Assembly: GCA_026770705.1 (NCBI GenBank)
Contig: JANJGN010000323.1
Coordinates: 124,001 to 188,000, forward strand
Source: Isurus oxyrinchus
Lineage: Eukaryota
Reading direction: 5' to 3'
DNA: 64,000 nt
Shown in pieces: positions 1 through 61,361 of this stretch. Position numbers and translations under genes: made by a program. Every line of letters begins with the position of its first letter. The stretch's first letter is position 1. Under the pieces are notes generated by a model. That model searched no databases. It had not been told where the DNA came from and saw nothing but the letters and a program-made list of their open reading frames with translations.

Positions 1-404
1 AAGGAGGTTTCACTCTGTNNNNNNNNNNNNNNNNNNNNNNNNNNNNNNNNNNNNNNNNNNNNNNNNNNNNNNNNNNNNNNNNNNNNNNNNNNNNNNNNNN
101 NNNNNNNNNNNNNNNNNNNNNNNNNNNNNNNNNNNNNNNNNNNNNNNNNNNNNNNNNNNNNNNNNNNNNNNNNNNNNNNNNNNNNNNNNNNNNNNNNNNN
201 NNNNNNNNNNNNNNNNNNNNNNNNNNNNNNNNNNNNNNNNNNNNNNNNNNNNNNNNNNNNNNNNNNNNNNNNCAGACAGACACAAACACACACATTCACA
301 CACACACACACACATTCACTCACACACACACATTCACTCACACACTCACTCACACACACAAACACACACACAAAGACAATATCCCAATGACAACAAACTG
401 CGAT

Positions 405-2590
405 TAAGAGCTTCCTACAACTTAACTAAGAGACCAAAGACATATTGAACTGTCTAAAAGTGACCTGTTTTTCAAAGAAATACAAGATTGTACACAGATC
501 AAAAATGGCTGACACAAGTCACCTGATTGCTGATACTGTGAAGTTGATCACTTCTCTGGAAAGGTTCAAATGAATTGCACTGCAGACCTGTTGCATGGAA
601 GTTCACGCCTGGGGTGTGTCAGGGTCCACTTCAAATAGAGACACTCTTAAAAGGAAGGCATTAAAATGCAAAGTGCTGGACTTTGATCAGCTGTAGTTCA
701 ATCAAAACATTGGGAACTGCTCACCAAGCAGATAATCATCAACCATTCAAAACCCCCTGTGGAAGATACAATACCCCCGTCTCCTGTTGATTTATATCTT
801 GAAATGCATCAAAGGTTTCAGAGATGCAAAGATAAAAAAATGGGAATACTAGGTCTATAACAATGAATGCAAAACATGCTGATCGAATTGACTTCAGGGA
901 TATACAGACAGGAGTTTAACAAATGGTTCTGCCAAGCAGATATAAGAGAAAGGAGGGGAAAAAGAAATATGGCAGTCTTCCACAAACACTGCTGGAAAAG
1001 AGCAGAAATGATTTCTCCCTCTCTATCTCTCTGTCTGAAGCTAACAGAATGTCTTCAACAATGTGCAAGTCTGAGCCAGATAAAATACAGGAATCTACAG
1101 AAAACCAACTAATTTAAAACAGCTTCAAACTTCACAGCCTACGTTGTAGTACAAGCAAACGACTCTTTTAATTTTTTATTGGACTCTATAATTATNNNNN
1201 NNNNNNNNNNNNNNNNNNNNNNNNNNNNNNNNNNNNNNNNNNNNNNNNNNNNNNNNNNNNNNNNNNNNNNNNNNNNNNNNNNNNNNNNNNNNNNNNNNNN
1301 NNNNNNNNNNNNNNNNNNNNNNNNNNNNNNNNNNNNNNNNNNNNNNNNNNCTGTGTGTGTGCATTTGTCTGTCNNNNNNNNNNNNNNNNNNNNNNNNNNN
1401 NNNNNNNNNNNNNNNNNNNNNNNNNNNNNNNNNNNNNNNNNNNNNNNNNNNNNNNNNNNNNNNNNNNNNNNNNNNNNNNNNNNNNNNNNNNNNNNNNNNN
1501 NNNNNNNNNNNNATTATTTTTCCTCCAGTTAGGTAACTAATAAACTTACTCTTTCTTTGACTCCACCAAACGTGGTTTAATTGGTTCATTCTTAACAATC
1601 AAAGAGACTTGCTTTGGAAATTGCATTTGGGGGAAAATATATTTTAAACCCTTTTTTTCAACCAACCATAATTACCTCTTAAACATCTTAATCTCATTAC
1701 TACTGAATTCAAAGCCCACATCTCAAAACATACAAGTTGGAAATTAGTTGTGACAGTTGTTTCAAGTTTCCCTCCAGGGTTTGAACAGCTCAGCATTTAC
1801 CATCTGTTATGTCATAACAGAGCTTCCTTCAACTTAACCAACGAGCCAAAAACGTATTGAACTGTTTAAAGGAGACCTGTTTTTCAAAAGTACAAGATTA
1901 GGCATTGATCAAAAATGGCTGTCACGAGTCACCTGATTGCTGATACTGCAAACTTGATCACTTCTCTGGACAGCTTCAAATGAATTGCACTAAAGACATG
2001 TTGCATGAAAGTTCTCACTGAGGTGTGTCAGGGTCCACCTGAAACAGGGGCTCCATTAAAAATGCAAAGCGCTGGACTCTGATCACTGTAGGTCTATCAA
2101 GCTAATGGGAACTGCTCACCATGCAGATATTCATCAGTCATTCAAAACCTCTTGTGGAGGATGAAATGCCTTCATCTCCTGTTGATTTATATCTTGAAAT
2201 GCATCAAATGTTTCAGAGATGCAAAGATCAAAAAAGGGATTACTTGGTCTGTGACAATGAATGCAAGACATGCTGATCGAATTCCCTTTGGGAATATACA
2301 GACAGGAGTTTAACAACAGGTTCTGTCAAGCAGATATAAGAGAAAGTAGGAGGAAAAAGAAAGATGGCAGTCACTCAAAAACACTGCTGGAAAAGAGCAG
2401 AAATTCTCTCTCTCTCTTTCTGAAGCTAACAGCGCATCTTCAACAAAGTGCAAATCTGAATCAAATCACCACCAGGATGCCACAGGAAACCAATTAACCT
2501 TGAACAGCTGCAAATGTCAACAATCTACACCTCAAAGTCAAGCAATTGTATTAATCATATATTCTTTTAAATTTTTATTGGACTCTAACN
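405..2590 (+). repeat. Diverged direct duplication (~405-1190 vs ~1818-2590)
   Basis: Colinear matches from agagcttcct..caacttaac through tttttattggactcta. Confidence 0.85.
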
Positions 2591-4413
2591 NNNNNNNNNN
2601 NNNNNNNNNNNNNNNNNNNNNNNNNNNNNNNNNNNNNNNNNNNNNNNNNNNNNNNNNNNNNNNNNNNNNNNNNNNNNNNNNNNNNNNNNNNNNNNNNNNN
2701 NNNNNNNNNNNNNNNNNNNNNNNNNNNNNNNNNNNNNNNNNNNNNNNNNNNNNNNNNNNNNNNNNNNNNNNNNNNGTGAGTGTGTGTCTGTCTATGTACC
2801 CTTGTGAGTGAGTGTGTGTGTGTGTGTACATGTGTGCGTGTGGATTGTTGCATCTTTATTATTAACGTTATTTAAAAATAGTGATCACACAAGCCTGGTT
2901 TCTAAGGAAATGAAACTGCAAACAATTTACAGTAAAGTGAAACATACAGGAATAATCTATTTATTTTGAGCTGATGATATATAATTATACATGAGGCATG
3001 TTGCTAATTTCAAATGTCATCTGAAATATGGCAGGTCTGACAGAGCAGCATTCCCTCAGTGCCCACCCTCTGACAGTGCAGCACTCCCTCAGCATTGACC
3101 CTTTGAGAGTGCAGCACTCCTTCAGTATTGACCCTCTGGAAGTGCAGCACTCCCTCAGCACTGACCCTCTGGGAGTGCAGCTCTCCCTCAGTACCGACCC
3201 TCTGGAAGTGCAGCACTCCCTCAGTGCTAACCCTCCAACAGTGCAGCACTCTCTCAGTACTGACCCTCTGACAGTGCAGCACTCCCTCAGTACTGACCCT
3301 CCAACAGTGCAGCACTCCCTCACTGGGAAGAGTCCGTCCGCATTTTAAGCTGAAACCTTGAGACGGTCTCAAAATCCCAACCTTCCATCTCAGAGAGAGA
3401 GAGTGCGTTTATGTGAGAGAGAGAGACAATGTATGTGTGAGAGACTGAGAGTGTGTATGTGTGAGAGAGCAAAAGAGAGGTAGAGTGTGTGTGCATGAGA
3501 GAGGGAGGTAGCTTGTGTGTGTGAGAGAGAGAGTGTGTGTGAGAGAAAGAGAACGTCTGTGAGAGTGTGAGAGAATTTATGTGTGAGAGAGAAAGATAGA
3601 GAGAATGTGCGTGTGAGATAGTGTGTGTGCAAAAGAGAGTGTGTGTCTGTGAGAGAGTGTTTGTGTATGTGAGAGTGTGTGTGTGAGATCATGTGTGTGT
3701 GTGTGTTTGAGAAAGAGGGTGTGTGTGTTTGAGAGAGGGAGTGTGCGAGAAAGAGATGGTGTGAGTGTTTGAGGGAGGGGGAGATTGTGTGTTTGAGACA
3801 GGGAGTGAGAGAGAACATGTGTGTGAGAGAGAGAGTGTGTGTGTATGTGTGTGTGTGAAAGAGAAAGTGTTTGTGCAAAATAGTGTGTGTTTGAGAGTAT
3901 GTGTGCATGTGTGAGTGTGTGTGTGTGTGTGTGCTAATGTTTGTGTCTGTGTGTGTGTGAGGGTTTGTGTGTGAGTGAGTTTGTGCGTTTGTGTGCGTGT
4001 GTGTGTGCATGTGTGTGCGTGAAAGAGTGTTTGTGCAAAAGAGTGTTTGTTTGAGAGTATGTGTGCTAGTGTTTGTGTGTGAGTGNNNNNNNNNNNNNNN
4101 NNNNNNNNNNNNNNNNNNNNNNNNNNNNNNNNNNNNNNNNNNNNNNNNNNNNNNNNNNNNNNNNNNNNNNNNNNNNNNNNNNNNNNNNNNNNNNNNNNNN
4201 NNNNNNNNNNNNNNNNNNNNNNNNNNNNNNNNNNNNNNNNNNNCGAGTTCACAGTTACACACGTTGCTAGGGACCACTTTTCCGCCTCTCTGTCAGACTG
4301 TGTGTATCTGACAGCAGGTCAGGCAGAAATAGTCCAGAACGCGCTGTAGTTTTGTAGCATTGAAACAACGACAGGAACTAAATGAGTGCTGCACCAAATA
4401 AAGACATGGAGTG

Positions 4414-4664
4414 ACCACACCAAAAAACCACGTGACTTCCCCAGTTTCACATCTCCCTCAAACACAGAAAAACTGGGTTAACACTGACCCTCCTCCCAGA
4501 GCCAGTTCACCTCGTGTCCGATGCAGTCAGGAGAGGAAGATCATCTCTCCTCCGATCCTGCTAAACTGAACATTTCCAGAATTAGATCAGCTCCCTGAAG
4601 TGTCTCCAGTTAGTCATTCATCTGACAGGATTGACTCTACAACCCTGGGGACTCATTCTCCTGT
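4414..4664 (+). promoter_or_regulatory. Candidate leukocyte-type promoter and non-coding first exon of gene D
   Basis: ACCACA (RUNX-type) at 4414; CCACGTGACTTCCCC (E-box abutting an ETS core) at 4428-4442; donor ct|gtaagt at 4663. Confidence 0.4.
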
Positions 4665-6899
4665 AAGTAAAACACTTGCTGCTCCTGTCAAATCTCTTCT
4701 GTACAGCATGGTCTCTGGATGTCCCAGAACACTTTACAATAGAGTTCACCCTTTTTTCGAAGTGTGGTTACTGTTGTAATGTAGGAAACGCAGCAGCCAA
4801 TTAGCGCACAGCAAGCTCCCACAAACAGCAATGTGATCATCTGTTTTTGGTGATGTTGGTTGAGGGATAAATATTGGTCCCAGGACACCGGGGAGATCTC
4901 CCCCCTGCTCTTCCTCCAAATAGTGGCTGTGGGATCTTTCACACCCGCCCGAGAGGGCAGACGGGGGTCTCGGTTTAGTGTCTAATATTGGACTAATCTC
5001 CAGGCGAGGTTGGCTGGATGGATTATTGACAAGGTCCATTCACCCTGTAAAGAGTTTCTCTGTTTGAAATACCCGATCAAACATCGAGTTCTGTGTCTAA
5101 ACCTTGTGTTGAAAAGACACCTTTCCAGCTCTTCACCTGCCATTAGCTTGTTGAGTCTTCACACGCTCCGTCTGTCCGTGACCAACCCCTCTTAGCTCAT
5201 CCTTTCCTTGTCGTACATCGAGCTGTTCATCCTGACGGGTTCCATCCTTCCCAGTAACACTCCATCTCCGACATCAAACTAACTCCCAACACGTTGATGA
5301 ATTGTATGGATTCCAGCGTCAGTTGGTTCTGTCTGAGGCTGTTTCTCTGATCGGGGACCGAGCTGTTCTGAACGGACATTGTGTTCAGCAGTTCTTATTG
5401 CAGATCAGGCTGTTCAACCAATGCTGCTGTTCACTGAGGTGACTCCGATTCTACATTCACACATTAATGATCTCATGTCCAGCAGCAAACATCTGAATGA
5501 AGCCAGGTTCAAGAAAAACCCAGCTGCTTGATCCGACAGTTATCTGTTCAGGCATGGCCCCTTGTTCCAAATAACAAACATTATTTAAAAATAGTCATCA
5601 CATGAGCCTGGTTAACAAGGAAATGAAACCATGAACAATTTGCATTGAAGTGAAACGTACAGGACTAATCTATTTATATTGGGCTGATGATATAGAATGT
5701 TACACGAGGCATGTTGCTAATTTCAAACATCATCTGAATTACGACAGTTCTGACAGTGCAGCACTCCCTCAGTACTGACCCTCTGACAGTGCAGCACTCC
5801 CTCAGTACTGACCCTCTGATAGTGCAGCACTCCCTCACCACTGACCCTCTGACAGCGCAGCACTCCCTCAGTACTGACCCTCTGACAATGCAGCACACCC
5901 TCAGTATTCCCTCACTGGGGAGAATCTGCCTGGGTTTTGAGCAGAAATCATAAGCAGGTCTTAAAACCACAACCTTCCGTATTAGAGAGAGTGTGTCTGA
6001 GAGAGAGAGAGAGCGAGAGAGACAGAGAGAGTCTGTGAGAGAGAAAAAGAGTTAGAAAGAGTGTGTACATGTGTGAGGGAGAGTGTGTGTGTGTGTGAGG
6101 GAGAGATTGTGCGTATCAGAGAGAGTGTGTGTGTGTGTGAGGGAGAGAGTGTGTGTGTGTGAGGGAGAGTGTGTGTGTGTGAGAGGGAGNNNNNNNNNNN
6201 NNNNNNNNNNNNNNNNNNNNNNNNNNNNNNNNNNNNNNNNNNNNNNNNNNNNNNNNNNNNNNNNNNNNNNNNNNNNNNNNNNNNNNNNNNNNNNNNNNNN
6301 NNNNNNNNNNNNNNNNNNNNNNNNNNNNNNNNNNNNNNNNNNNNNNNNNNNNNNNNNNNNNNNNNNNNNNNNNNNNNNNNNNNNNNNNNNNNNNNNNNNN
6401 NNNNNNNNNNNNNNNNNNNNNNNNNNNNNNNNNNNNNNNNNNNNNNNNNNNNNNNNNNNNNNNNNNNNNNNNNNNNNNNNNNNNNNNNNNNNNNNNNNNN
6501 NNNNNNNNNNNNNNNNNNNNNNNNNNNNNNNNNNNNNNNNNNNNNNNNNNNNNNNNNNNNNNNNNNNNNNNNNNNNNNNNNNNNNNNNNNNNNNNNNNNN
6601 NNNNNNNNNNNNNNNNNNNNNNNNNNNTGAGAGAGATTCTGTGTGTGTGTGAGGGAGAGTGTGTGTGTGTGAGGGAGNNNNNNNNNNNNNNNNNNNNNNN
6701 NNNNNNNNNNNNNNNNNNNNNNNNNNNNNNNNNNNNNNNNNNNNNNNNNNNNNNNNNNNNNNNNNNNNNNNNNNNNNNNNNNNNNNNNNNNNNNNNNNNN
6801 NNNNNNNNNNNNGGGAGAGAGTACATGAGAGTGAGAAAGAGGGAGACAGCAGAAGAGAAAGATAGAGAGAGATGGTAAATGTTTGAGAGAGAGAGAATG

Positions 6900-7880: not shown

Positions 7881-9033
7881 ATGGGAGAGGTCGGTCTGAT
7901 ACTGATCTTCATCAGCTTGCTGCAAGGTACAAATTCATTACTGATCGGAACTCAGGGAATTGGATTCTTTCCTGGAGTGAGGAAGTGAACATTTAATTTT
8001 AGAGAACAGGGTTAGTGATCACACAGAGAGTGAGTGATTAGCGAGTCAGAGAATGTAGCAAAAGAAAAAGCCTCATACGGACTCGAAACACCAACTCTGT
8101 TTCTCTCTCCACAGATGCTGTCAGACCTGCTGAGTTTTTCCAGCATTTTCTGTTTGTGCATCAGAGAGCTTGTTTCAATAGGAATGACAGTGCATTTATA
8201 TAGCACCTTTAATGCAGTAAAACATCCTTATTGCTTCACAGGATTCCCCCACAAGGGGTAACATCCCCTCAGCATCGACCCTGTCAAACCCCCCACCACC
8301 TCAGAATCTTATATGTTTCAATAAGATCACCTCTCATTCTTCTAAACTCCAATGGATACAGGGCCCAACCTGCTCAACATTTCCTCATAAGACAAACCCC
8401 CTTCATCCCAGGAATCAGCCCAGTGATCCTCCTCTGAACTGCCTCCAATGCAGAGTCTATCCCTCCCTAAGTAAGGAGACCAGAACTGTACACACTGCTC
8501 CTGATACAATCTCACCAACGCCCTGTACAGTTGTAGCAAGACTCCCCTCCTTTTATACTCCATCCCTTTGCAATAAAGGCCAACATTCCACTTGCCTTCC
8601 TCATTCCGTGGTGTTCCTGAATGCTGACTTTATGTGATTCATGTACAAGGACACCCAGATCCCTCTGTACCGCATTCTGCTGCCTCCCTCCATTGAAGTA
8701 ATATTCTGCTTTTTGATGTCCTGTCTCTTCCCTTGTTGCCTTTCAGGAGTGACGTCAGAGGGATGGTCTATGAAGGCGCTGCCTCGGAGGGCCATCAGCA
8801 GCTCTTGTGTGGTTATTCCGTGTAGCTTTGACTTTCCTTCCCACTCTTACACAGCACTGCACGGAGCTTGGTATAAATATTGGTATAGATGGAAATATAC
8901 CATCACATACACCAAAGATCCCAACTATGGGATGGCCACATTCGTGGGACGTGCTAAAATAATCGGCGACTTGGAAGGGAAGAATTGTTCGGTGAGGATT
9001 GACAGTCTCAGAGCTGAAGACAGTGACGTGTAT
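7881..9033 (+). pseudogene. Siglec-like gene D remnant: leader exon 7881-7926 plus V exon 8747-~9033 truncated by a retrotransposon
   Basis: MGEVGLILIFISLLQG|gtac, then tttcag|GVTSEGWSMKALPRRAISSSCVVIPCSFDFP...GDLEGKNCSVRIDSLRAEDSDVY, which runs into gag-like sequence with a stop at 9048. No downstream Ig exons were found. Confidence 0.8.
8262..8660 (-). mobile_element. CR1-type LINE 3' fragment
   Basis: LYRALVR..EQCVQFWSPYL, LSYEEMLSRLG. Confidence 0.8.
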
Positions 9034-10170
9034 TGCACCCAATTCTAAATCTTTTCACCAATTAGTCGACCTCATGAAGATGTATTTTCAGCTGAAGCCG
9101 TGGGTAATAATGCAGAGGTTTAAGTTTAACTCCAGAGTAAGGGCCCAGGGAGAGTCCATCGCAACCTATACAGTGAAGTGGAAGCAGGTGACTGAGCACT
9201 GGGACCTCGGAGACACACTCAATGACATGTTGCGCGGCCGATTGGTTTGTGTCGTTCACCCCAACGCCATTCAGAGCCGTTTACTCGCAGAAGCCGACAT
9301 CGATTTGAAGCGCACCATGGAAATAGCGCCAGGCATGGAAAGTGCTGGGAGAGACTGGCGGGATTTACAGGATGTACAACATGGCGCCAGTCCTCAGCTG
9401 GGACAGGAACCAACCACCGGGCGTGTGACTCAAACTGGAGAGAGAGGGAGAGAGAGAGACAGCCGCCAAGCGAGAGACAGTCTCTGCCGCTCCAGAAACT
9501 AAAAGGCTTCGTGGGAGTATTTCAGCAGCAACTCCGAAGTTGGCCTGTTCTCGATGTGGGGGGGAGTGAGCTCGTACCGGACACCTGCAGGTTCAAGGGG
9601 GCAGAATGCCATCACTGCCACAAGAAAGGGGTGGGTAATAAAGCAATGCAGGGTGAAATCGAGACAGCCCATCAGGCAGTGCACCAACATGATGGAAGTG
9701 AATAATATCACAGAGCCTGAAGCTGCTGATACCGATGTCTATTCCCTGTCCAATGTCACAGTGGTAAAAACTGAACCTATAACCATCACAACCCAAGTGA
9801 ATGGGCAGCCACTAGTAATGGGGCAGATACGGGAGCCTCAGACACAGTGGTGGAAGAGCCCACATTTAAACAGCTAAATGAAGGAACCCAGACGCTGAAT
9901 TTAGAGCCAACAATGGATCAGCTGAAGACACACACTGGAGAATCCATACAGGGAAAGGACCTCATCCCAGTACCTGTGTCCTACAGGCAGCAGACAGCCC
10001 AGCTTCCAGTGATCATAGCGACAGGTGAGGGCCCTAGTCTTCTGGGCCGAGACTGGTTCCAGAAAACCAAGCTCAGCTGCTCTGAAATGTTTCACTGGAG
10101 GAGTTGCTGAGTTGCTGGGGGAATATGAGAGTGTATCTCGGAATGAGTTTGAAGAATTGAAGCATCCTCA
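9034..10170 (+). mobile_element. Degenerate Gypsy-type LTR retrotransposon fragment (gag, zinc knuckle, protease)
   Basis: QRFKFNSRVRAQGESIATY, LNDMLRGRLVC, ECHHCHKKG, SLLGRDWF; frameshifted. Confidence 0.85.
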
Positions 10171-12608: not shown

Positions 12609-12821
12609 TTGCGTCAATATGAACACATATTTGCACAAGGTGAAGGGCGTTGCGGAGGGACTGATAGTTCTCGGCGCCAGACAGTCAATGTCCCAGTGAC
12701 CTTACTGCTGGTCCCAGGCCAGTGGGACAGGGAACATCGACACTGCAATATCCAGAAATGGGTGTGATACCACACAGCTACCCACCCGCGGCTGTCCCCT
12801 TCAAGTGTTTCAGGTATAAGA
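12609..12821 (+). promoter_or_regulatory. Candidate hepcidin proximal promoter
   Basis: TTGCGTCAAT (12609) and TTGCACAA (12631) C/EBP-type sites. TCGGCGCCAGAC contains the GGCGCC BMP/SMAD element (12673-12678) overlapping a CAGAC SMAD site. TATAAGA at 12815 lies about 90 nt before the ATG. Confidence 0.6.
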
Positions 12822-12906
12822 GCAGGAAGCTCCTCGAGTTACAAACCAAAGCATCAAAGCAGAGCCAGAAGATCAGAAGAGACAGGCAGAGATGGGAAGC
12901 TCCCAG

Positions 12907-12984
12907 ATGAAATGGCGACTTGTCTTGTTCACTCTGACTTTGCTGCTCTCCCTGCAGCTGAGTCACTTCTTCTCCTTGTCGAGG
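12907..12984 (+). CDS. HAMP: HAMP exon 1 coding part (signal peptide)
   Basis: ATG at 12907, hydrophobic MKWRLVLFTLTLLLSLQLSHFFSLSR, donor AGG|gtaagc. Confidence 0.85.
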
Positions 12985-15900
12985 GTAAGCTAAGAGATGT
13001 CCCTCTGGGTGAGGTGTTTCTTGCACATGACTCTACGTCTACCACCCAGATAGACTGGTCACTTCCGCAGTTTGATATTATTATGTTCGTGCCTTTAATA
13101 TTGTCGCCCTCTATGAATTTAACATCATTTCCTTCTGTCGTTTCCCCTGAAATTCTCATTCTTGTTTTCAATCCCTCCTCAGCCACTCCCTATCTCTGTA
13201 ACCTCCTCCAGCCCATACAACCCTCCCTATCTCTGTAACCGCCTCCAGCCCCTACACCCCTCCCTATCTCTGTAACCTCCTCCAGCCGCTACAACCCTCC
13301 CTATCTCTGTAACCTCCTCCAGCCCCTACACCCCTCCCTATCTCCGTAACCTCCTCCAGCCCCTACAACCCTCCCTATCTCTGTTACCTCCTCCAGCCCC
13401 TATAAACCTCCCTATCTCTGTAACCTCCTCCAGCCCCTACAACCCTACCTATCTCTGTAACCTCCCCCAGGCCCCACAACCCTCATGATCACTGTAACCT
13501 CCTCTAGACCCTACAACACTCCCTATCTCTGTAACCTGCTCCAGACCCTACAACCCTCCCTATCTCTGTAACCTCCTCCAGACCCTACAACCCTCCCTAT
13601 GTCTGTAACCTCCTCCAGGCCCCATGACCCTCAGAATCACTGTAACCTCCTCCAGCCCCTACAATGCTCATGAACTCTATAACGTCCTCTCCACACTATA
13701 ACTCTCCCTATCTCTGTAACCTACTGTGGCCCCTACAACAGTATCTATTTTGGTAACCTCCTCCAGCCTCTACAACCCTCCCTACCTCTGTAACCTCCTC
13801 CAGCCCCCACAACCCCCCCATCTCTTTAACCTCCTACAGCCCCTACTCACCTCCCTATCTCTGTAACCTCCTACAGCCTCTAGAACCCTCCCTATCTCTG
13901 TAACCTCCTCCAGCCGGAACAACCCTACCTAAATCTCTGGTCTGAGTCTCACTCCAGGGAATTCAGTCCCATAACGTCGGTCAACACTCCGTGCTGAGGG
14001 AGTGCTGCACTGTCAGAGGGTCAGTAGTGTGGAAGTGTTGCACTATTGGAGGGACAGTACTGAGTGAGTGCTATACTGTCGGAGGTCAGTACTGAGGAAG
14101 TGCTGCATTGTTACAGGGTCAGTACTGTGGAAGTGTTGCACTGTCGGAGGGTCAGTACTGAGGGAGTGCTGCACTGACGGAGGGACAATACTGTGGGAGT
14201 GCAGCACTATCGAAGGGTTAGTACTGAGGGAGTGCTGCAGTGTCAAAGGGTTAGTACTGAGGGAGCACAACAATGTTGAATGAGACATTAAACTGAGTCC
14301 CCCGTCTGCCCTCTCGGGCGGGTGTGAAAGATCCCACAGCCACTATTTGGAGGAAGAGCAGGGGGAGTTCTCCCCGGTGTCCTGGGACCAATATTTATCC
14401 CTCAACCAACATCACCAAAAACAGATGATCTAGGCCATGATCACATTGCTATTTGTGGGATCTTGCTGTGCACAAATCAGCTGCCACATTTCCTACAGTG
14501 TGAGTGCACTTCAAAAACATCCTTCAGTGGCTGTGAAATGCTTTGGGATGTGGTGAAAGGCGTTAGAGAAATGCAAGTCTGTCCTCCTCCCCCTCTCTCT
14601 CCTGTACCTCTCTCTCTCTCTCTCCCTCTCCCTCAATCCTCCTCTCACTTTCTCCCTGATAAATTCTTTCTTTTTGCAGGTTGACACTGCTTTAGGTTCT
14701 TCGACGATTGAGAAATCTGTGGATTCCCCGGACACGGTAGGTGGAAATTCATTCCTTATTTTAAGGTTTCTCCCTGCTCGTTTCTTCCACAGAAAGTTTT
14801 CTGATTTCAAGCTGATTTCAGTGGCAGTCTGTCTCGGTTATACTCAGGAGGCATGTTTGAAATCGAGCCCCCCCCGCCACCCCTTTTTTTGCAAAGCTGG
14901 GAAGAGGCAATTCCAAGGAAGTGAACATATCCCCACAGGAATTTTAAATGTAACCCACGCCGGGAATAGTGAGAGGGAGACTGATCCAGCCTGGGAGTGG
15001 GTTAAAGAGAGGCTGGGAGTCGAGAGTCGGAGAGAGGGATGGAATGAGGGAGGGAGGGATTGGAAGAGAGAGACAGAGAGTGGGACGGGGAGGGGTGAAA
15101 GGGAAAGAACATAGGTGGGAGAGAGTGACAGAGGGAGAAATTAAAGAAGAGATGCAGAGTGAGGGAAAGTGAAAAGGGAAGAGAGATTGTCCAAGAGAGA
15201 GAAATTAACAGGAAAGGGAGAGTTACAGAGTGAGCGAAAGGTACAAAAATAGTGTGAGAGAGAGGGAGAGATACAGAGTGGGAGAAGGAGACAGGGGAGA
15301 GAGAGGGAGAGAGACAGGAAAAGGGAGAGAGGAGAGAAAGATTGGGAGAGAGGGCAATTGAGCGGAAGAGTAGGAGAGAGAGAGACAGGGAGAGGAGGAG
15401 TGGAAGAGAGGAAGAGAGAGAGAGATATGGAGCAGGAGAACACCTCCTCCGGTCCCGATGTTCCTCCAAAATCTCTGACATTACTGCATCTCCCGGGTCC
15501 CCCTGATTCCCATCGCTCCACCATTGGTGGCCGTGCCTTCAGCTGCCTGGGGCCCTGAGCTCCGGAATACCCTCCCTTAACCTCTCTGCCTCTCTCTCTC
15601 TCTCTCCTTTAAGACGCTCCTTAAAAACTGACATCTTTGACCAAGCTTTTGGTCACCTAACCCTAATATCTCCATATGTGACTCAGTGTTAGACTTCTCT
15701 CTGATTTACGCTCCAGTAATGTGGGCTGGGACATTTTGCAATGCCAGAGGCGCTGTGTAAATGCAAGTTGTGAGTGTTATGTGGAAGGGAGATCCCAGGC
15801 GGCAGTCAGTGCCAGAGACTGGAGTCATTGTGCGCAGACCGTATCTCATCTCTCCGAATGCACAATCGGTTTGACTGTCAGCCAAAGCATTTTTGATATT

Positions 15901-17183
15901 TGATCCTTCTAACTGTTTATAACCAGGCCTACATCAAACACCGAGAGGCTGGTTAATCAACAGACACCTTAGAGGATCGAGTGAAAGACAAAGAGGACTT
16001 GCATTTCTCTAGCGCCTTCCAACACATCAGGACGTCCCAAAGTGTTTCGCAGACAATCAAGTGCTTTTTTCTTTCATGTGAGGTCACTGATGTAATGTGG
16101 GAAAAGAATCATCCATTGGCGCACAGTAAGATCCCACAGACAGCAGCATGATAATGACCAGCGCGCTCCCAGTACTTGCACTGCAAGTGTCAGTTCAGGG
16201 TGTCTGCTCGATTCTCTGCGACTCTCAGCTCTGAGTTAAAAGGACCACCAGGCGTAATTGAGGAATGACCGAGCTATCGGAGGGTCAGTATTGAGGGTGT
16301 GCTGCATTGTCAGAGGGTCAGTACTGAGGGAGTGCTGCATTGTCAGAGGGTTAGTACTGAGGGAGTGCTGCATTGTCAGAGGGTCAGTCTTGAGGGAGTG
16401 TTGCACTGTCGAAGGGTCAGTACCGGCGGGGGGATGCACAGTCGGAGGGTCAGTACTGAGGGAGTGTTGCATTGTCAGAGGGTCAGTCTTGAGGGAGTGC
16501 TGCACTGTTGGAGGGTCAGTACTGAGGATGTGCTGCATTGTCAGAGTCAGTACTGAGGGAGTGCTGCACAGTCGGAGGGTCAGTACTGAGGGGGTGCTGC
16601 ACTGTTGAAGGCGCTGTCTTTCAGATGAGACATTAAACTGGGGCAACCAATCTGCCCTCTCAGGTGGATATAGAGGATTCCATGGCCACAATTTAAATGA
16701 AGTGCGTCAGGAGTTGGGGGGTATGTGTGGAGGGGGTGGTGGGGGCTGGATGGGTGGAGTTATGTCCGCTTTCCTGGGGCAAACATTTATCCCTCAACTG
16801 ACATTGGTAAAAAACTGAAAATCGGGGCCATTATCACATTTCTGTTTGTGGGATCTTGCTGTGCGTGAATTGCCTGCTGCGTTTCCTACATTACAGCGGT
16901 GAGCTCACTTCAGAAAAAGTCCTTCCTTCAGCTGTGGAACACTTTGGGCCATCCTGAGGAGGGGAAAGGCGCTATAGAAATGCGCCATCCTCCTTCCAAT
17001 GACGCGCCTGATTGAAATGATGCCTTCTTTCTTTCCGGAATGTTCTCACCTATTGTGCTCCTGCTTTTCCAGGGCTCCTTGCTGCAGCGCCAGAAGAGAA
17101 TGGGCAGATTCTGCAGATTCTGCTGTAACTGCTGTAATTGGAGAGAATCAAATGAGACTTGTGGTCTCTGCTGTAGATATTAG
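12907..17183 (+). CDS. HAMP: Hepcidin prepropeptide gene, 3 exons: join(12907..12984,14680..14736,17073..17183), 81 aa
   Basis: Spliced translation is MKWRLVLFTLTLLLSLQLSHFFSLSR|VDTALGSSTIEKSVDSPDT|GSLLQRQKR-MGRFCRFCCNCCNWRESNETCGLCCRY*. All junctions are GT-AG phase 0. It has a signal peptide, an RxKR furin site and the hepcidin C-x2-CC-x-CC-xn-C-x2-CC cysteine pattern, in the three-exon layout typical of HAMP. Confidence 0.92.
13185..13930. repeat. ~37-bp minisatellite (also 53110-53640)
   Basis: Unit CCCTCCCTATCTCTGTAACCTCCTCCAGCCCCTACAA. Confidence 0.95.
13990..14582 (+). mobile_element. Deu-domain SINE with an expanded internal 33-bp minisatellite (HAMP intron 1)
   Basis: gagacattaaac..aaagatccc..gttctccccggtgtcctgg..ccctcaaccaacatcac core; related copies at 4705-4980 (-) and 16277-16990 (+). 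Confidence 0.7.
14680..14736 (+). CDS. HAMP: HAMP exon 2 (propeptide, 57 nt)
   Basis: Strong acceptor ttctttctttttgcag| and donor ACG|gtaggt; phase 0-0; VDTALGSSTIEKSVDSPDT. Confidence 0.8.
17073..17183 (+). CDS. HAMP: HAMP exon 3 (furin site and mature peptide, which starts at 17100)
   Basis: Acceptor ctcctgcttttccag|; GSLLQRQKR MGRFCRFCCNCCNWRESNETCGLCCRY then TAG. Confidence 0.93.
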   Translation, partial: GSLLQRQKRMGRFCRFCCNCCNWRESNETCGLCCRY

Positions 17184-17544
17184 ACCCTGGCCTCATTCAC
17201 GCAAGGTCATCCTGCACCATGCCACAGCCTCTCCCCTCCTTATCATTGCTTAGCAATCTATTTCACACAGGCCCTGTTCATTAATTCCAACTGAAACTTT
17301 ACCTGCGTTTTACAGCAGGGAAAGAAGCCATTCGGCCCATCTGCTCCATGCTGGTGTTTCTGCTCCACACGCGTCTCCGCCCACCCCTTCTCCATCTCAC
17401 CCCATCACCATATCCTTCTATTCATTTCTCCCTCGTGTGTTTATCCAGCTTCCCCTTAAATACATCGACACTATTCACCTCACGTGACTGTGTTTGTGTC
17501 TGTCTTTATGAGCGTGTGTGTGTGTGTGTGTGACTGTCAATATG

Positions 17545-17975
17545 TGTGTGTCAATGTGAATGAGTGAGTGTGTCAGTGTGTCTGTGTGGGTGTGTGTGAC
17601 TGTCAGTGTGTGTCAATGTGAATGAGTGAGTGTGTCAGTGTGTCTGTGTGGGTGTGTGTGACTGTGTCAGTGTGTGTCAATGTGAATGAGTGAGTGTGTC
17701 AGTGTGTCTGTGTGGGTGTGTGTGACTGTGTCAGTGTGTGTCAATGTGAATGAGTGAGTGTGTCAGTGTGTCTGTGTGGGTGTGTGTGACTGTGTCAGTG
17801 TGTGTCAATGTGAATGAGTGAGTGTGTCAGTGTGTCTGTGTGGGTGTGTGTGACTGTGTCAGTGTGTGTCAATGTGAATGAGTGAGTGTGTCAGTGTGTC
17901 TGTGTGGGTGTGTGTGACTGTGTCAGTGTGTGTCAATGTGAATGAGTGAGTGTGTCAGTGTGTCTGTGTGGGTGT
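17545..17975. repeat. 64-bp GT-rich tandem repeat
   Basis: tcaatgtgaatgagtgagtgtgtcagtg recurs at 64-bp intervals. Confidence 0.9.
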
Positions 17976-19844
17976 GGGTGTGTGAGTGTGCAAGTGAATG
18001 TGTGAGGAATCTTATGACTAAGTCATTTGAATGGATGTTACTGGGGTTAATGATAGTTAAAATTCAGAGAGATGTAAAGCGGGCTCCTGATTTTGCTGCT
18101 TTATGCTCCCGGGCACAGATTCACCCCGACAATGTGTTCATGATTCACCATTATCTTGTCGGGACTTTAATTGTAAAGATTATGATTTGTAAAAAAAAAT
18201 GAATAAACAACTTCTGTCTTCACAAAGTGTCTGGCTTGGTATTTCAGGCTACTTGTCTCCCCCTCACCCTCCCCCCCCACCATACCCCCCACACCAGGGA
18301 ACAATTGTCCCCCCTTCCTCTGAAGTTCGGGGTAAAGATCAGCTTTGTTCAATGCAAGCTGTTCCGACATCGAGAACGTTGTTACAAATATCTCACAAAG
18401 GGCACACGCCATGATAGCCCACTTTCAACAGATTTTACCAGTTGACCAGGTAGAAAAGCTTTTCATAAACCACAACGTAGGTGTTCAATTCTTGCTGCTG
18501 TTTGCTTAATGCTCTCATAACTGCTATAACCTCTCTAGTTCCACTACATAACAACACAAACATAAATAAACAGAAGCAGGAGTAGGCCTTTTGGCCCCCC
18601 CAAGCCTGCTTGTCCATTCAATTTGAACCTGGCTCCTGCTGAAAGTTATTTAAGTTGAAGCGATAAAGCCATCAGGTGCAGGGATTAAAATGTAAGCAAA
18701 GGAAAAATAATACTTAGAGATGAGAGTTAAAATCAGTTTCTGTCAAGTATTATAGTGAGGCCCATTGCTCTGGATTCCTTCTTTCCAGAGTGAAGGGTTT
18801 GAAACTAGGAGTCACATTCAGCAGCTGCGTTGTCTTCTCTAGTTGACTATTTGGAGGTTGCCTGTAGATGTGAATCAGCAGGTCAGCAGCTTTGAGGAGT
18901 GAGTGAAGGTCCCTTTTATTTACAGGATCTGCCACAGGATGTGCAGGAATATTCCTGCTGAATCCCCCATCCTTGTATTCATGAAGGTTTTGAAACTGGA
19001 AGTCATATTCAGCAGCTGCAATGGCCTTTGTAGTCAACTGTCTGGAGGTTGCCTGTACAGGTGGACTCGGCATGTCAACAGCTTTGTTGGGCAGGGGACA
19101 CGGGTAGTGAAGGTCCCTTTTCTTTAAAGGCTCTGCCAGTGCAAAACTTGATGATCCTGGGTCAAAATCATGTAACTCCCTCCCCAAAAGCACTGTGGGT
19201 GTGACCTATGGAGGGTCCTTGGCTTCGACAAGCAGCCTACCAGCTCTGCTCTCAATTCCTCTTCACACTTGCTTCCTTCCTCCACTGGTCTTTACTTTGT
19301 TATAGTGTTAGTGTCCGCTCTGCCTTTTTTGTTGCTTTCCCAATTCTTCCCACCAACTCTCTCTGGCTTGATCCTTCTCTGTGCTCATCTCATTGGTTTG
19401 GGTTTCTATCCGTTCATTGACCTGGTGTAATCTGAAACTGGTGCAATCAGGTAGGGGTGGGGGGGTTGGCGCTGGCCGTGGGTGGTGATACACGGCTACC
19501 TTTTTACCAAAATTCTTTCACGGGATGTGGACAGCGTTTGTTACCTGTTCCAGACTGACCCCTTGAGAAGGGGGTGCTGAGCTGCCTTTTCGAAGTGCTG
19601 CAGTTCGCCTGGTTTGACTGGTCTGTGGCGGGTTTTGATATAACTCAGTAGCTTGCTCGGCCATTTCAGGGGCCAGTTAAGAGTCAACCACATTGTTGTG
19701 GGTCAGGAGTCACACGTAGGCCAGAATGGGTAAGGACGGCAGGTTTCCTTCCCCAAAGGGCATTAGTGACCCAGATGGGTTTTTGCAACAATTGGCCTTA
19801 GTTTCATGGTCACCATTACTGAGACTAGCTTCGCATTCCAGATG

Positions 19845-20925
19845 TCACATCCAGTCGTGGACAATTAAACAACTCACTGGAGGAGGAGGCTCCACAAAAA
19901 TCCCCATCCTCAATGATGGAGGAGCCCAGCACACCAGTGCAAAAGACAAGACTGAAGCATGCGCAACAATCTTCAGCCAGAAGTGCTGAGTGGCTGATCC
20001 ATCTCGGCCTCCTCCGGAGGTCCCCAGCATCACAGATGCCAATCTTTAGCCAATTCGATTAATTCCACGTGATATCAAGAAAGGGCAGAAGGCACTGGAT
20101 ATTGCAAATGCTCCAGACCCTGACATTATTCCGGCAATAGTACTGAAGACTTGTGCTCCAGAACTTGCTGCGCCCCTAGCCAAGCTTTTCTGGAATTTTC
20201 TAGTACAGCTGCAACACTGGCAACTACCCGGCTATGGGGTACATCCTGTACACAAAAAGCAGGACAAATCCAACCCAGCCAATTCCCCAGCAGTCTATTC
20301 TTGATCATTACTACAGTGATTGAAGGGGTCATCAACAGCGCTTGCAAGCAGCACCTGCTTACCAAGAACCTGCTCACTGACGCTCAGTTTGTGTTCCACC
20401 AGGATCATTCAGCTCCTGCCCTCATTACAGCCTTGGTTCAAACATGCACAAATGAGCTGAACTCCAGAGGTGAGGTGAAAGTGACTGTCCTTGACATCAA
20501 GGCAGCATTTGACTGAATGTGGCAAAACAAGGAGCCCGAGCAAAACTGGAGTCAATGGGAATCGGGGGAAAACTCTCTGCTGCTTGGAGTCATACCCAGC
20601 ACAAAGGACGATGGTTGTGATTATTGGGGGTCAATCATCTCAGTTCCAGGACATCACTGCAGGAGTTACTCAGGGTAGTGTCCTAGGCTCAACCATCTTC
20701 AGCTGCTTCATCAATGTCCTTCCTTCCATCATAAGGTCAGAAGTGGGGATGTTTGCTGATGTTTGCACAATGTTCAGCATCATTCACGGCTCCTCAGATA
20801 CTGAAGCAAGTTATGTCCAAATGCAGCAAGACCTGGACAACATCCAGGCTTGGGCTGACAGGTGACAAGTAACATTCATGCCACACAAGTGCCAGGCAAT
20901 GACCAGCTCCAACAAGAGAGAATCT
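19845..20925 (+). mobile_element. CR1-clade LINE reverse transcriptase fragment
   Basis: VTVLDIKAAFD, GVTQGSVLGSTIFSCFIN, MFADV; frameshifts. Confidence 0.88.
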
Positions 20926-21414: not shown

Positions 21415-22345
21415 GCTGCTGACACAAAGATAGGTTGGAAAGTTAATTGTGAAGCGGATGTAAGGTGGTTAGAAAGTGACATCGATAGGTTAAGTGAGTG
21501 GGCAAAGATCTGACAAATGGTGTATAATGTGGGCGCATGTGAAATTGTTCATTTTGTCAGAAAGAACAAGAAGGAAGATTATTATCTAAAAGGTGAGAGA
21601 TTGCAGAGCTCTGAGATGCAGAGGGATCTGGGTGTCCTCGTGCATGAATCACAAAAGGCTGGTTTGCAGATACAGCAGGTCATGAGGAAAGCTAATGGGA
21701 TGTTATAATTTACTGTGGGGGAATTGAATAGAAAAGTAGGGAGGCTACGTTCAGTTGTACAGGGCACTGGTGAGACCACATCTGGAGTACTCTGTACAGT
21801 AAGGTCACCTTACTTAAAGAAAGATGTAAATGCATTAGAAGCAGTTCAGAGAAGGTTTACTAGACTAATACCAGGATTGGGTGGTTTGTCTTATGAGGTC
21901 AGGTTGGACAGGTTAGGCTTGTATCCACTGGAGTTTAGAAGAGTAAGAGGCAACTTAATTACAACCTTTAAGATCCAGGGGAGTCTTGACAGGCTGGATA
22001 TGGAGAGGATGTTCCCTCTTGTGTGAGAATCTAGAACTAGGGGGTCATGGTTTAAAAATAAGGGGTCGCTCATTTAAGATAGAGATGAGGCGAAATGATT
22101 TCTCTCAGAGGGTAGTAAGTCTTTGGAACACTCTGCCTCAAAAGGCAGTGGAAACAGGGTCTTTGAATATTTTTCAGGCAGAGCTAGATAGATTCTTGAT
22201 TAACAAGGGGGTGAAAGGTCATTGGGGGTAGGCAGGAATGTGAGGTTGAGGTGACAATCAGATCAGCCATGATCTTACTGAATGGCGGAGCAGGTTCGAG
22301 GGGCTGAGTGACCTACTCCTGATCCTAACTCAGATATCCATATGT
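21415..22345 (+). mobile_element. CR1-type LINE 3' fragment
   Basis: RDLGVLVHESQK, LEAVQRRFTRLIPG, FSQRVVSLWN. Confidence 0.88.
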
Positions 22346-23809
22346 TCTCAAAGGCAATTGGGGATGGGTAACAAATACTGGCCTAGTCAGCGACACCAAC
22401 ATCCCTGAAATGAATAAGAAAAAAATGTATCAATCAATTAAATTTATTGATTAATCGAATCTAAATTCCTCCAGCTGCCGTGGTGGGATTTGAACCCTTA
22501 CCTCCAAAGCATTCACCTGGGCCTCTGAATCACTGGCCTAGTGCCATTCCCATTGTGCGACTGTCTGCTATCATCATGGCTCTTTCACATCGATGTGGAA
22601 GTCCTGATAAAAGAAGCATTGGACGAGGTACATAAGGTGACAAATCAGGAGCTCCATTGCTCAATAGGAATGGAAAATAAAGACAAATGAACATAAACCT
22701 TCCAGTCGCTAATTAGTGAGGTAGTGCAGCACTGTCGGAGGATCAGTACTGAGGGAGTGCTGCACTGTCAGAGGGTCTGAACTGAGGGAGTGCAGCACTG
22801 TCGGAGGCTCAGTACCGAGGGAGTGCTGCACTGTCGGAGGGTCAGTACTGAGGGAGTGCAGCACTGTCGGAGGTTCAGTACTTAAGGAGTGCTGCACTGT
22901 CGGAGGGTTCGAACTGAGGGAGTGCTGAACTGTCGGAGGGTTTGAACTGAGGGAGTGCTGCACTGTCGGAGGGTCTGAACTGAGGGAGTGCTGCACTGTC
23001 GGAGGGTTTGAACTGAGGTAGAGCTGCACTGTCGGAGGGTCAGTACTGAGGGAGTGCTGCACTGTTGGAGGGTTTGAACAGAGGGAGTGCTGCGCTGTCT
23101 AAAGAACATTGTACAAATTGTACAAAATTGCATCTGATGCCTGTGTCTCATGCACACATGAAGTTCATGCACACAACAGGAATATTTCTCGCTGTTTCTG
23201 AGCAGCAAGGCAGCCTTCATATCGCACCACCCACTGGCAGGAGAGTGTGCAGCTGCAATGTGACATGTTTACTTTGGAAATTTCTATTATAAAGATGGAC
23301 AGAGGAATTCATCTGATTGGAAAACATGACAATATGAAGTAATGTCTTTGAGCCAAGAATTTGGCAGCAAAATAAGAATTTTAATCTATAAGTATCTACA
23401 GAACAGGCTGAGCATTTTAATCACTTGTGTTAATCAATGTAATTTTATTCATAACCCAAATGCTTCTTACAATCTATCGCAGCATGAAAAAGGTGCAGCA
23501 TTCAGAAAGCACATTCCAATCAGAGAACAGAGTTTAGCAACATCACATTTCTGTTCATTCCTATTCGACCATGTTGGCTGCACACAGCCAGACAATGCCG
23601 TGGTTATGATGTGTCCACACAGCAGGACTGGGGAGCACCAGGTATAAGGAAAAGTTTCAGCTTGCTGAGGAGAAGAAGGAGAATCTCTCGTTCCAGGTTT
23701 CTCTCCGTACATTAAGAAGCAGGCATGCCGATGTTTCATTGCACTCTGTCTGCTGATGGGAGTCCGCTTGGAAATTGCTGTTTGTGCTGATGGAAAGAAT
23801 AAGCTTTTC

Positions 23810-24410
23810 ATAAATCGAGGGATTGAGTAAAAACACAGGGAGGTTATGCTGAACATTTATAAAGCTCTGGTTAGGTCACAACTAGAGTATTGTGTCCAGT
23901 TCTGGTCTCCTCACTTTGGGAAGGAAGTGAGGGTCCTTGAGAGGGTGGGGAGGAGATTGAGCAGAATGGGTCCAGGGATGAGGGCTTTTAGCTACAAGGT
24001 TGGGTTGGAGAAGCTGGGGTTGTTCTCCTTGGAGCAAAGGAGATTGAGGGGGGACCTGATCGAGGTGTACAAGATGATGATGGGTTTAGATCAGGTAGAC
24101 AAAGACAAGCTGTTGCCATTAGCTGATGGGACAAGGACTGGGGGACACAGATTGAAGGTTTTGGACAGAGGGGGGATGTGAGGAGGAACTTTTTTACACA
24201 GCGAGTGGTAATGAGCAGGAACTCGCTGCCTGCGAGGATGGTGGAAGTGGAGACGATGAACGATTTCAAACAGAAATTGGTTGGACACTTGAGGGGAAAT
24301 AAACTCACAGGGATACGGGGATAGAGTGGGGGAAATGGGACTGAGTGGATTGCTCTACAGAGAGACAGCATGGACTCAATGGGCTGAATGGGCTCCCACT
24401 GTGCTGAAAT
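23810..24410 (+). mobile_element. CR1-type LINE 3' fragment
   Basis: YKALVRSQLEYCVQFWSPH, LEQRRLRGDLIEVYK. Confidence 0.88.
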
Positions 24411-24667: not shown

Positions 24668-26349
24668 CTAGAGAACACACAGAAAGAAATCATCACTGGC
24701 TCTCCGCTTTCAATCTCTCACTCTGGCTGAACAATCAAGCTTCATATCACTGCAACATTTGCTGTAATATTGACCCATCCACTGGGATTCAATGTGGAAT
24801 GAATGTTTTCATTGTAAACACTCTAAGAGTGGACAATCGGAACTTTCCCCTTAGCGTGGAACATTGGTGAGAATGGATCATTGTGCTGTTGGACTCCCTG
24901 TCCAATGTTTCTCTCCATCGCTGTGTATAGGATTGTGCTGTAGAAAATTCTGGAAACGTTTAGTGCAGGGTGGAAATCCATCTCGGACGCGTGTGCGAAT
25001 CGGGCAGCATCGAGATGGACTCCCCCATGAACTTACACCCCCCGCTTAATAAACAGTTCCAATCTTTACCCAGAGAGAGGGGAGAATGTGGAACTCGCTC
25101 CCACAGGGAGTGGTTGAGGTGAACAGTATCGATGTATTTAAGGGGCAGGAGGGTCGGTAACCAGAGGGACACAGATTGACGAACCGGAGGGGGAGATGAG
25201 GAGAATTTGTTTTGACAGAGTGAGTTGCTGTGATCTGGAAGGCGCTGCCTGAAAGGGCAGTGGAAGCAGATTCAGTAGGAACTTTCAAAAGGGGAATTGG
25301 ATAAACACTTGAAGGAGGAAGATGGGGGCAAAGTGGAGTGGTGGTTAGTGGATCTGATTGGATAGAACATTGAAAGACCTGGCACAGGCACTATGGGCTG
25401 AATGGCCTCCTCCTGTGCTGTACCATTCTCCGCTTCCATGATCTCTCCCCCAGTCAGTAACGACTCCAGATCCCTCTTGAAGGTGACAGAGAATCAGCAA
25501 CCACCACACCCACTGACAGCACATTCCCGAGGATCACTACTCTCTGGGAAAAGATGAACTTGCCAACATCCAGCCTATTCCTGTTTCCCAGAGAGTGTAA
25601 ACCCTTCAGGGAGGCACTGAGGAAGTTTTCAATAAAATGACATCAAATCTACCGTTTGAGAAATAATTGAATTCTGATGAACTCACAGCTTGTGTAGCAA
25701 ACTGGGAAGTGGAGTTGCTTGAAAAGCTGGGAAACACAAGGATTAAGTGCTACAATGCCACCACTGGTAGGAGACTGTAACTACAGCGTGACGTTTACAT
25801 AGGCAGTCATCATTATAAACAGAGGCATTGGACATACTGGGAAATATGTGCACTGGAATGGTGAGTAAATGATGTAAGCTTTTCGCCAGCAGGAATTCTC
25901 TTCCTAAACCTCTCCACATCTCTCTTTTTCTCTGATACACAAACAAAGTCACACAGATTCAGATAAGGAGGATTTGGGACCGGTGATTGTTCGAAGGGTT
26001 AGCTTTCAGGAAGCTTCTTAAAGGGAGAGAGAGAGTTGGAGAGGCAGAGAGTATCTGTGAGAGCCTCTATGCATCTGAATGTCTGTAATAGACTTTAGAA
26101 TTTCCATATTCTGAGAGAGTGCTGCACTGTCGGAGGGTCAGTACTGAGGGAGTGCTGCACTGTCGGATGGTCATTACAGAGCATGTGTTGCACTATTGTA
26201 AGGTCAGTACTGAGGGAGATCTCCACTATTGGAGGGTGAGTACTGAGGCAGTGCTGCACTGTCAGAGGGACATTAATCAGGGAGTGCTGCACTGTTGGAG
26301 GATCAGTACTGAGGGAGTGCCGCACTGTTGAAGGGTCAGTATTAAGGTG

Positions 26350-26566
26350 CTGATTTACAAGACAGGACAATGGATTAGGAGCTCTCAGAACTGCCCCCAT
26401 GATTTCCAATCATTCCGTTACTTACCCAGGACCTGTCCGACTGCTCGCCTGGAGAGGAACTGCCCACACGCTCTGCTTGGGCTGAATGACCTCTTCCTGT
26501 GCTGCTCCCTATTTGTGTTTAATTAGAAAGGGTGGATGTGTCACTGTGAGTCAAAATGAGGAAGTG
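26350..26566 (-). pseudogene. Third copy of the 5' exon module joined to sequence from gene B's leader-V intron (deleted paralog remnant)
   Basis: 26426-26510 matches 43311-43395; TGAGTCA and GAGGAAGTG at 26547-26566; 26350-26400 matches 39860-39910. Confidence 0.6.
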
Positions 26567-47215: not shown

Positions 47216-48820
47216 GCGTGCATTCAGATTAAGAACCTTTCTGTCTTTTCCCCATTTCCCCTACTCTGACCTTATTTGCTGGGACACTGGTTGATGCTGG
47301 TTTCAGTCTCAGTTTGTCTCAGTTGGTCACACTCTGGCCTCTGTCTCGAGACTGATGTTCCCTCTTGGTAGTGACAGTGATGGGGGTGTTGGGGAGGGTG
47401 TGGATATTGACCCCACTGCTCCCCCTCCCCCGCTCCGCCATTCTTTCCTGGGAGACCCGCCAGGAACCTTGTTCCAGCTGTGATGGGCAGCCCTTCCACA
47501 CTTTCCTGTGGGCCCCGCACTTCATGTGTAAAAGCGCTAAGTTAGAGCAGGGATGGAGAAATGAACAGGGGGCGTGGGATGAGTGTGGGGGTCTCACAGC
47601 CAGAACTGACCCTGCCCACAACACTGTGGAGGGGGGTAGGTTTCACCAGCTCTCTGTCTTTGCAACATCATAACCGCAGTGTGAAGATTGTCCCCATTCC
47701 CTGTATCTTAATATTGTAAAGACAACTGGGAGATATCCTGCAGTCTCTGAGAAAGAATTTGGTGCACCTACAGCACCACCACTGGCAAGAGAGTGTAAGT
47801 ACAGTGTGAGATGTTTACATGGGAAATTTTCATGATAAATGTGGACACAGGAATTTACATAATTTGGTGGGGAAATGCAATGACATGAATTAACAGATTG
47901 GAGCAGGGAGGTTGTCCCAGAGTAGGATATTTAATAAAAATATATCTGTACAGAGTTGTCTGGGCATTTCAATCCCTTGTGACAATAAATGTAATATTAT
48001 AGAAAATGCAAAAGCTTCTTGTAATCTATCACAGAATAAACAAGTTGCAGAATTCAGAAAGCACATTCTGAAATGTTAACAATGTTCAGTGACGTCACAT
48101 TTCTGCTAATTACTATTCGGCCATGTTGGCTGCACGCAGTCAGGCAGTCCCTCGGTTGTGATGTGTCCACACAGCAGGACTGGGATGCATCAGCATCAAA
48201 GGACATGCTTAGTTGTTGCTCTGCAATGCATTTATTGCGAGCCTGTTGCACACACGCCCTGTCGAAGGAGTATCCATGGTTCCATTCTGAATCGAGGCAG
48301 ATCAAATTTACTACAACTTGCATTTATATAGCACCCATAATGTAGCAAGCTGTCCCAAAGCTCTTCAGGGGATTGTTAACCACATATAAATCCATCGCAG
48401 AGACACATAAAGAGATATTAGGGACAGGTGACCAAAAGCTGAGTTAACAAAGGCAGTTAATAAGNNNNNNNNNNNNNNNNNNNNNNNNNNNNNNNNNNNN
48501 NNNNNNNNNNNNNNNNNNNNNNNNNNNNNNNNNNNNNNNNNNNNNNNNNNNNNNNNNNNNNNNNNNNNNNNNNNNNNNNNNNNNNNNNNNNNNNNNNNNN
48601 NNNNNNNNNNNNNNNNNNNNNNNNNNGTCCCCAATGACTTAGCATCAAGTCGTCACTGGGGAAACATTTCATTCCAAACCACACCAACCATACACCCATT
48701 CAGTCCCTTCCTCCCTCTGTCCCCCTCTCCCCCAGTGGGTTGTCTCGTGTTCCCAGGAAACTTAATCTCTGCCCCCACCCACAAACCTCCTCACCCCCTC
48801 TCCCCGTTTCACACTCAGTT

Positions 48821-49063: not shown

Positions 49064-49544
49064 CTACAGAGAAATGGAAACAGAAGGCATCCTCACATCA
49101 TTTACTGGCACTGATAGGGTTAAATTATTGTGCAGCGTCGTTAGTGTCAGTCGTGGCTCAGTGGGTTTAATCCTCCCTCATGTCATCTGAAAGAAACCAC
49201 CTATGGCAGTGCAGTGCTCCCTCAGTACTGACCCTCTGATAGTGCAGTACTTCCTCAGTACTGACCCTCCGACAGTGCAGCACTCCCTCAGTACTGACCC
49301 TCCGACAGTGCGGCACTCCCTCAGTACTGACCCTCTGTCAGTGCAGCACTCCCTCAGTACTGACCCTCCGACAATGCAGCACTCCCTCAGTACTGACCCT
49401 CCGACAGTGCGGCACTCCCTCAGTGCTGACCCACTGTCAGTCCCGCACTCCCTCGGTAATGGCTCTGGTGAGTGACGGCTTGGTTTCTGCACTCAGGTGC
49501 CTGGTCTGAGGCTCAATAACATGAATCTTGTAATCAGAGAGGAT

Positions 49545-60736: not shown

Positions 60737-61361
60737 CTGGGGAGAGAAATATCAATATTTAACTCTGGATGGTTTGTAGATCCACTAGACTCGATATCCA
60801 CCCCCTCCTTCACGGGGTCAGAGTGGCTGCAGTGTGGACCATCTACAGGACACACAGGGATCTCCCCAGTGTTTCACAATGGATAGAAGAGAATCCTGGA
60901 CACAAAAGCGGAAATATTCATGCTACATTGGCTCATGGTCCTCAGGACCCTGTTTGTGTACAAACCTGCTCTGCAACAGAACTGAAGTTGGGGAAAATCC
61001 ATTTGGAATTCCACTGTCCAGGGCATTGTGTTAACTTGCTGAGTTTGTTTTAAATCTAACATTTATTTTTGGTCTGTTGCCTTAAAGGAAGTGTAACTGG
61101 GAGTCAGGTTAATTAGGAATTTTAGGAGTTATTATAGCAGTCATTGTAGTCTTATGTATGTGCTTGAAATCTTTTATTTTGATGACAAATATTTTAATTT
61201 ATTGTTTTAAATCTCTAAATGTCTTGATGGAGTTATAGCTTCTGAATTCAGTGCACAATCATAACAAATACCAATTGCAAAATCATTATGATAGTGAGAC
61301 CAAGTTCCTCTCATGGAGTTGGTCTGCCTGGCACACATCACCTGCCAAGTGATAACACTGT

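Follow-up and report, generated by a model that had tools for sequence, protein, structure and literature searches.

A probable hepcidin-family gene with an enlarged hairpin loop among Siglec/CD22-like genes of the shark Isurus oxyrinchus

We analysed a stretch of 64,000 nucleotides from the genome of the shark Isurus oxyrinchus (GenBank assembly GCA_026770705.1, contig JANJGN010000323.1, positions 124,001 to 188,000 of the forward strand), hereafter called the window, and describe the anatomy, the family match and the neighbours of a hepcidin-family locus that lies in it. Sequence inspection and translation revealed three short exons on the plus strand, with canonical GT-AG borders and every junction in phase 0 (table 1). 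The donor of exon 1 reads AGG/GTAAGC, where the slash marks the exon border, and that of exon 2 reads ACG/GTAGGT. The acceptor of exon 2 is a pyrimidine tract followed by CAG/G, and that of exon 3 is TTTTCCAG/G. These exons and their translations match the original prediction, which a model had made from the letters of the window, and which described three phase-0 exons splicing to a signal peptide, a propeptide, an RQKR motif and a peptide with eight cysteines.

Table 1. Features of the hepcidin-family locus. Positions are those of the window, counted from its first letter.
Feature	Positions	Strand	Description
BMP-responsive-element-like motif	12673-12682	+	GGCGCC directly followed by AGAC; 219 bases upstream of the ATG
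TATA box (TATAAG)	12815-12820	+	77 bases ahead of the first ATG; sequence inspection
Exon 1, coding part	12892-12984	+	31 codons; predicted signal peptide with hydrophobic core; second in-frame ATG at 12907; translation
Intron 1	12985-14679	+	1695 bases; 37-base and 33-base minisatellites
Exon 2, predicted	14680-14736	+	19 codons; propeptide, acidic and Ser/Thr-rich; predicted from splice sites and HAMP layout
Intron 2	14737-17072	+	2336 bases
Exon 3, coding part	17073-17183	+	36 residues: end of propeptide, RQKR (17088-17099), mature peptide (17100-17180), stop (17181-17183)
AATACA	17459-17464	+	the one hexamer resembling a poly(A) signal in the 1 kb past the stop

The first exon contains two in-frame ATG codons. 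The one at 12892 stands in the context GCAGAG-ATG-G (G at -3 and G at +4), while the one at 12907 stands in the context TCCCAG-ATG-A (C at -3). The former is the likelier start because its context is better, and a start there gives a precursor of 86 residues (31 + 19 + 36). Residues 10-22 of its translation form a hydrophobic core, in which the Kyte-Doolittle mean reaches 2.7 across residues 10-19, and which we read by hydropathy as a predicted signal peptide. Exon 2 was assigned by its phase, by the splice sites that border it and by the layout of HAMP, the hepcidin gene. It is embedded in an unrelated open reading frame (ORF) of 146 amino acids (14674-15114), as had been pointed out before. 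The accompanying claim that the rest of the product is absent from the list of ORFs holds at higher length thresholds, but fails at 40 amino acids, where exon 3 is listed as a 47-amino-acid ORF (17040-17183). The unannotated locus is a reminder for genome annotation that genes of about 85 codons split into three short exons get missed.

The mature peptide, which directly follows RQKR, has 27 amino acids and a net charge of about +1.4. Its eight cysteines are separated by 2, 0, 1, 0, 8, 2 and 0 residues, i.e. they follow the order C-x2-CC-x-CC-loop-C-x2-CC. The hairpin loop has 8 residues and includes the one N-x-T sequon of the peptide, at Asn18. The segment ahead of the first cysteine is MGRF, with just four residues and no histidine. 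In hormone hepcidins, this segment has six residues with a histidine at the third position and enters ferroportin; it reads DTHFPI in humans and QSHLSL in teleost type 1 hepcidins. The six-residue start with His3 that iron-regulatory hepcidins require is lacking in the shark peptide. Hence, the label of iron hormone that came with the original prediction is unsupported for this copy, since the ferroportin-binding N-terminus is missing. An AlphaFold2 model of exon 3, made with no alignment, presented two helices at a predicted local distance difference test score of 67 and was discarded as not credible for a hairpin with four disulfides.

We assigned the locus to a family with searches made exon by exon, so that the Pfam score concerns exon 3 only. 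This exon matches the Pfam family Hepcidin (PF06446) with an E-value of 6.8e-6 and 26.7 bits, across model positions 24-52 of 53. Its top match among all solved structures is the hepcidin of hybrid striped bass (1s6w), with an identical CRFCCNCC, a common CG-x-CCR tail and an insertion of 3 residues in the loop. In a six-frame scan of the 64 kb, the cysteine pattern of hepcidins occurs at this locus alone, and so does the simple CC-x-CC. Self-comparison of the window retrieved dispersed repeats only; neither the promoter nor any of the exons recurs. The locus is very probably a real gene of the hepcidin family.

The genes that flank the locus are Siglec/CD22-like, with matches to the Pfam families Ig_CD22, V-set, C2-set_2 and Ig_3 at 8641-9045 on the plus strand and at 36384-39319, 55383-56924 and 60261-60755 on the minus strand. 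Human HAMP adjoins MAG (Siglec-4) and CD22. Because of this human arrangement, the position of the shark gene fits an orthology of the two loci, as judged from the order HAMP-MAG-CD22. We saw no USF2 in the 64-kb window. The HAMP architecture that had been proposed is thus supported by the Pfam E-value, the match to the bass structure, the division into three exons of which the third holds the entire mature peptide, and the Siglec/CD22-like neighbours. The copy was also rightly described as intact, given that the frame is preserved, none of the four splice sites is damaged, and neither the convertase site nor any of the eight cysteines is lost.

Teleost type 2 hepcidin genes (HAMP2) are multi-copy and mainly antimicrobial, and expansion into many copies is a typical trait of defence-type hepcidins. 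Their peptides, e.g. the bass hepcidin, share with the shark peptide the order C-x2-CC-x-CC-loop-C-x2-CC, the identical CRFCCNCC, the C-terminus formed by CG-x-CCR and an aromatic residue, and a short N-terminus ahead of the first cysteine. In contrast to bass hepcidin, the loop has 8 residues instead of 5 and carries the N-x-T sequon. Human hepcidin-25 is the product of a three-exon gene beside MAG and CD22, is processed by a convertase from a prepropeptide of about 85 residues, and has eight cysteines and a loop of 4 residues. The shark locus resembles it in the number of exons, the size of the prepropeptide, the predicted convertase processing, the eight cysteines and the Siglec vicinity, but its peptide is devoid of the N-terminal DTHFPI needed for ferroportin binding, and its loop is 8 residues long rather than 4.

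The region upstream of the gene contains a TATA box, and transcription would begin about 30 bases past it (from 12815), i.e. near position 12845. We searched the 1 kb upstream for regulatory motifs. GGCGCC occurs once, where 0.19 occurrences are expected by chance, and is part of the BMP-responsive-element-like motif (BMP: bone morphogenetic protein). TGACGCAA likewise occurs once, at 12609 of the minus strand, against 0.04 expected. The consensus motifs of STAT (TTCNNNGAA), the E-box, HNF4 and NF-kB are all absent from this 1 kb. We regard GGCGCC and TGACGCAA as suggestive only, i.e. as weak hints. On the other side of the gene, a unit of 64 bases is repeated 7.2 times with 97% identity on the plus strand (17517-17980); this array starts 334 bases past the stop and lies ahead of an AATAAA at 18202. 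Among the sequencing runs that share words with the locus, none is recorded as RNA, and the small runs contain 5-11% of the words, which could stand for exons only or for shared intron repeats. This copy is probably expressed.

We propose the following route from gene to function. Translation would begin at 12892, or with less likelihood at 12907, and the signal peptide of exon 1 would target the precursor to the secretory pathway. Cleavage after RQKR by a furin-type convertase would follow, and the released peptide of 27 residues would fold as the hairpin of hepcidins, held together by four disulfides. This processing, the disulfide pattern and the function are deduced by analogy with hepcidins. 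The peptide would act as a secreted host-defence peptide, akin to the teleost type 2 hepcidins, and not as a ligand that shuts ferroportin. We lean towards this defence type over the hormone because of the four-residue start without histidine, the 8-residue loop and the sequon. The likeness of role to HAMP2 would be a case of parallel evolution and not of orthology, since the lineage is that of a shark. As a whole, the best explanation, which we consider likely, is that the locus is an intact hepcidin-family (HAMP-like) shark gene copy within a Siglec/CD22-like cluster, encoding a defence-type peptide. More tentatively, and with slightly more doubt than confidence, sharks may have a lineage-specific subfamily of long-loop and possibly N-glycosylated hepcidins, expanded within the Siglec cluster, devoted to host defence and separate from an iron-hormone hepcidin. 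If true, this subfamily would have arisen at the base of jawed vertebrates, in parallel to the HAMP1/HAMP2 split of teleosts and independently of it.

Several observations weigh against a functional defence-type hepcidin. The check with the Pfam hidden Markov model, which had been suggested for the spliced peptide along with the original prediction, was made on exon 3 and returned the significant E-value given above, but when this exon is scanned alone its score lies 0.3 bits under the curated gathering score of 27.0. The Pfam scan of exon 2 gave no match, and skipping this exon would likewise preserve the frame. A homologue search in a large protein database with the stop-free frame of 55 amino acids around exon 3 gave no candidate, a type of search that is ill-suited to a short cysteine-rich query. 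A phmmer search with exon 3 against 1.84 billion representatives, a database size at which a query of 36 residues is unable to reach significance, gave five matches; the two inspected are repeat-rich sequences with no relation to hepcidin, and each of the others matches in numerous stretches. A search of the ESM Atlas provided no usable match. Downstream of the gene, the 1 kb past the stop lacks a canonical AATAAA, the first being the one at 18202. Finally, the choice between defence and hormone comes only from the comparison with the N-termini of other hepcidins, and in sharks, ferroportin and a ligand with another start could have evolved together.

Another account would be that there is no gene and that short ORFs came to lie in this arrangement by chance, every exon being very short and exon 2 having no independent support. 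This is exceedingly improbable, given the Pfam E-value, the exact identity of CRFCCNCC with bass hepcidin, the uniqueness of CC-x-CC among the six frames of the 64 kb, and the correct order and phase in which signal peptide, convertase site and canonical splice sites are arranged. The gene could also be a recent duplicate, intact but silent, i.e. an incipient pseudogene in a hepcidin/Siglec cluster undergoing rearrangement. The absence of canonical poly(A) signals from the 1 kb past the stop and the 64-base tandem array that begins 334 bases downstream of it would be in line with such a fate, but the TATA box and the start context are intact, as are the frame, each of the four splice sites, the convertase site and the full set of eight cysteines, and we find this account rather improbable. 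The remaining explanation accepts a functional gene and concerns its role: the product could be the iron-regulatory hormone of the shark itself, a ferroportin ligand with a lineage-specific N-terminus. Membership of the hepcidin family (by Pfam and by the match to bass hepcidin) and a location next to Siglec genes, which is ancestral for HAMP, are compatible with this role. So is the GGCGCC-AGAC ahead of the ATG (0.19 expected by chance), as motifs of this kind drive the control of HAMP by BMP/SMAD. However, the hormone would have to work with four residues instead of six before the first cysteine and with no histidine at position 3, its loop is doubled and carries a glycosylation sequon, and the STAT site (TTCNNNGAA) is lacking in the 1 kb upstream. 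We consider this role unlikely for the present copy, and retain that of a defence-type peptide.

Hepcidin is both the master iron hormone and an antimicrobial peptide, and cartilaginous fish are the living jawed vertebrates most distant from humans. The existence of a hepcidin in sharks is what a specialist would expect; it is the unusual mature peptide that is of moderate interest. A shark copy that has an enlarged loop and lacks the ferroportin-binding start is, once annotated, of help in dating when hormone and defence roles diverged. The mature peptide is also small and easy to synthesise, hence testable. The hepcidins of cartilaginous fish are almost undescribed in the literature that we searched, where the only mention of a shark one comes from the plasma proteome of the nurse shark, in a study that detected hepcidin in plasma and found no ortholog in the annotation of the whale shark (PMC9207270). 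This report shows that sharks make and secrete hepcidin and that shark annotations can miss it. A review lists hepcidins only as antimicrobial peptides of fish in general (PMC6795676). In the literature searched, whose coverage stops at subscription journals, we found neither a shark hepcidin gene nor a long-loop form described, nor any expansion inside the Siglec cluster.

The surroundings of the hepcidin gene contain further Siglec-like sequences. Upstream, on the plus strand, a Siglec-like V-set exon in 8641-9705 (Pfam V-set, 24 bits, just below the cut-off) runs straight into retroelement ORFs, one of which (9247-9705, plus strand) has a stretch resembling a CCHC zinc knuckle. This exon appears orphan or disrupted. 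Downstream, the minus strand encodes three Siglec/CD22-like exon sets (36384-39319, 52476-56924 and 60261-60755), which include an Ig_CD22 first domain, C2-set_2 and Ig_3; the V and C2 exons of the three sets present strong mutual similarity. ORFs resembling fragments of reverse transcriptases of the long interspersed nuclear element type are found between the hepcidin gene and the next Siglec genes (20151-20865, 21715-22026 and 23846-24181, plus strand).

Eight runs of N in the window, totalling 1627 bases, lie in low-complexity sequence rich in GT/CA (19-6812 and 48465-48626). Between 30525 and 33623, a very long tandem array yields spurious ORFs of 590-782 amino acids in several frames of both strands (with units such as GLIIDSER or NNQTPFRI), and is a repeat rather than a gene. 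Both hepcidin introns contain the 37-base and the 33-base minisatellites. The latter occupies 13994-14265 and 16280-16605 within these introns, and is also present at 2985-3372, 5674-5970, 22709-23220, 26095-26409, 36859-37516 and 49178-49492. As a dispersed repeat family, present in both orientations and translating as ...SVLRECCTV... or ...HSLSTDPPTVQ..., it gives rise to cysteine-rich pseudo-ORFs.

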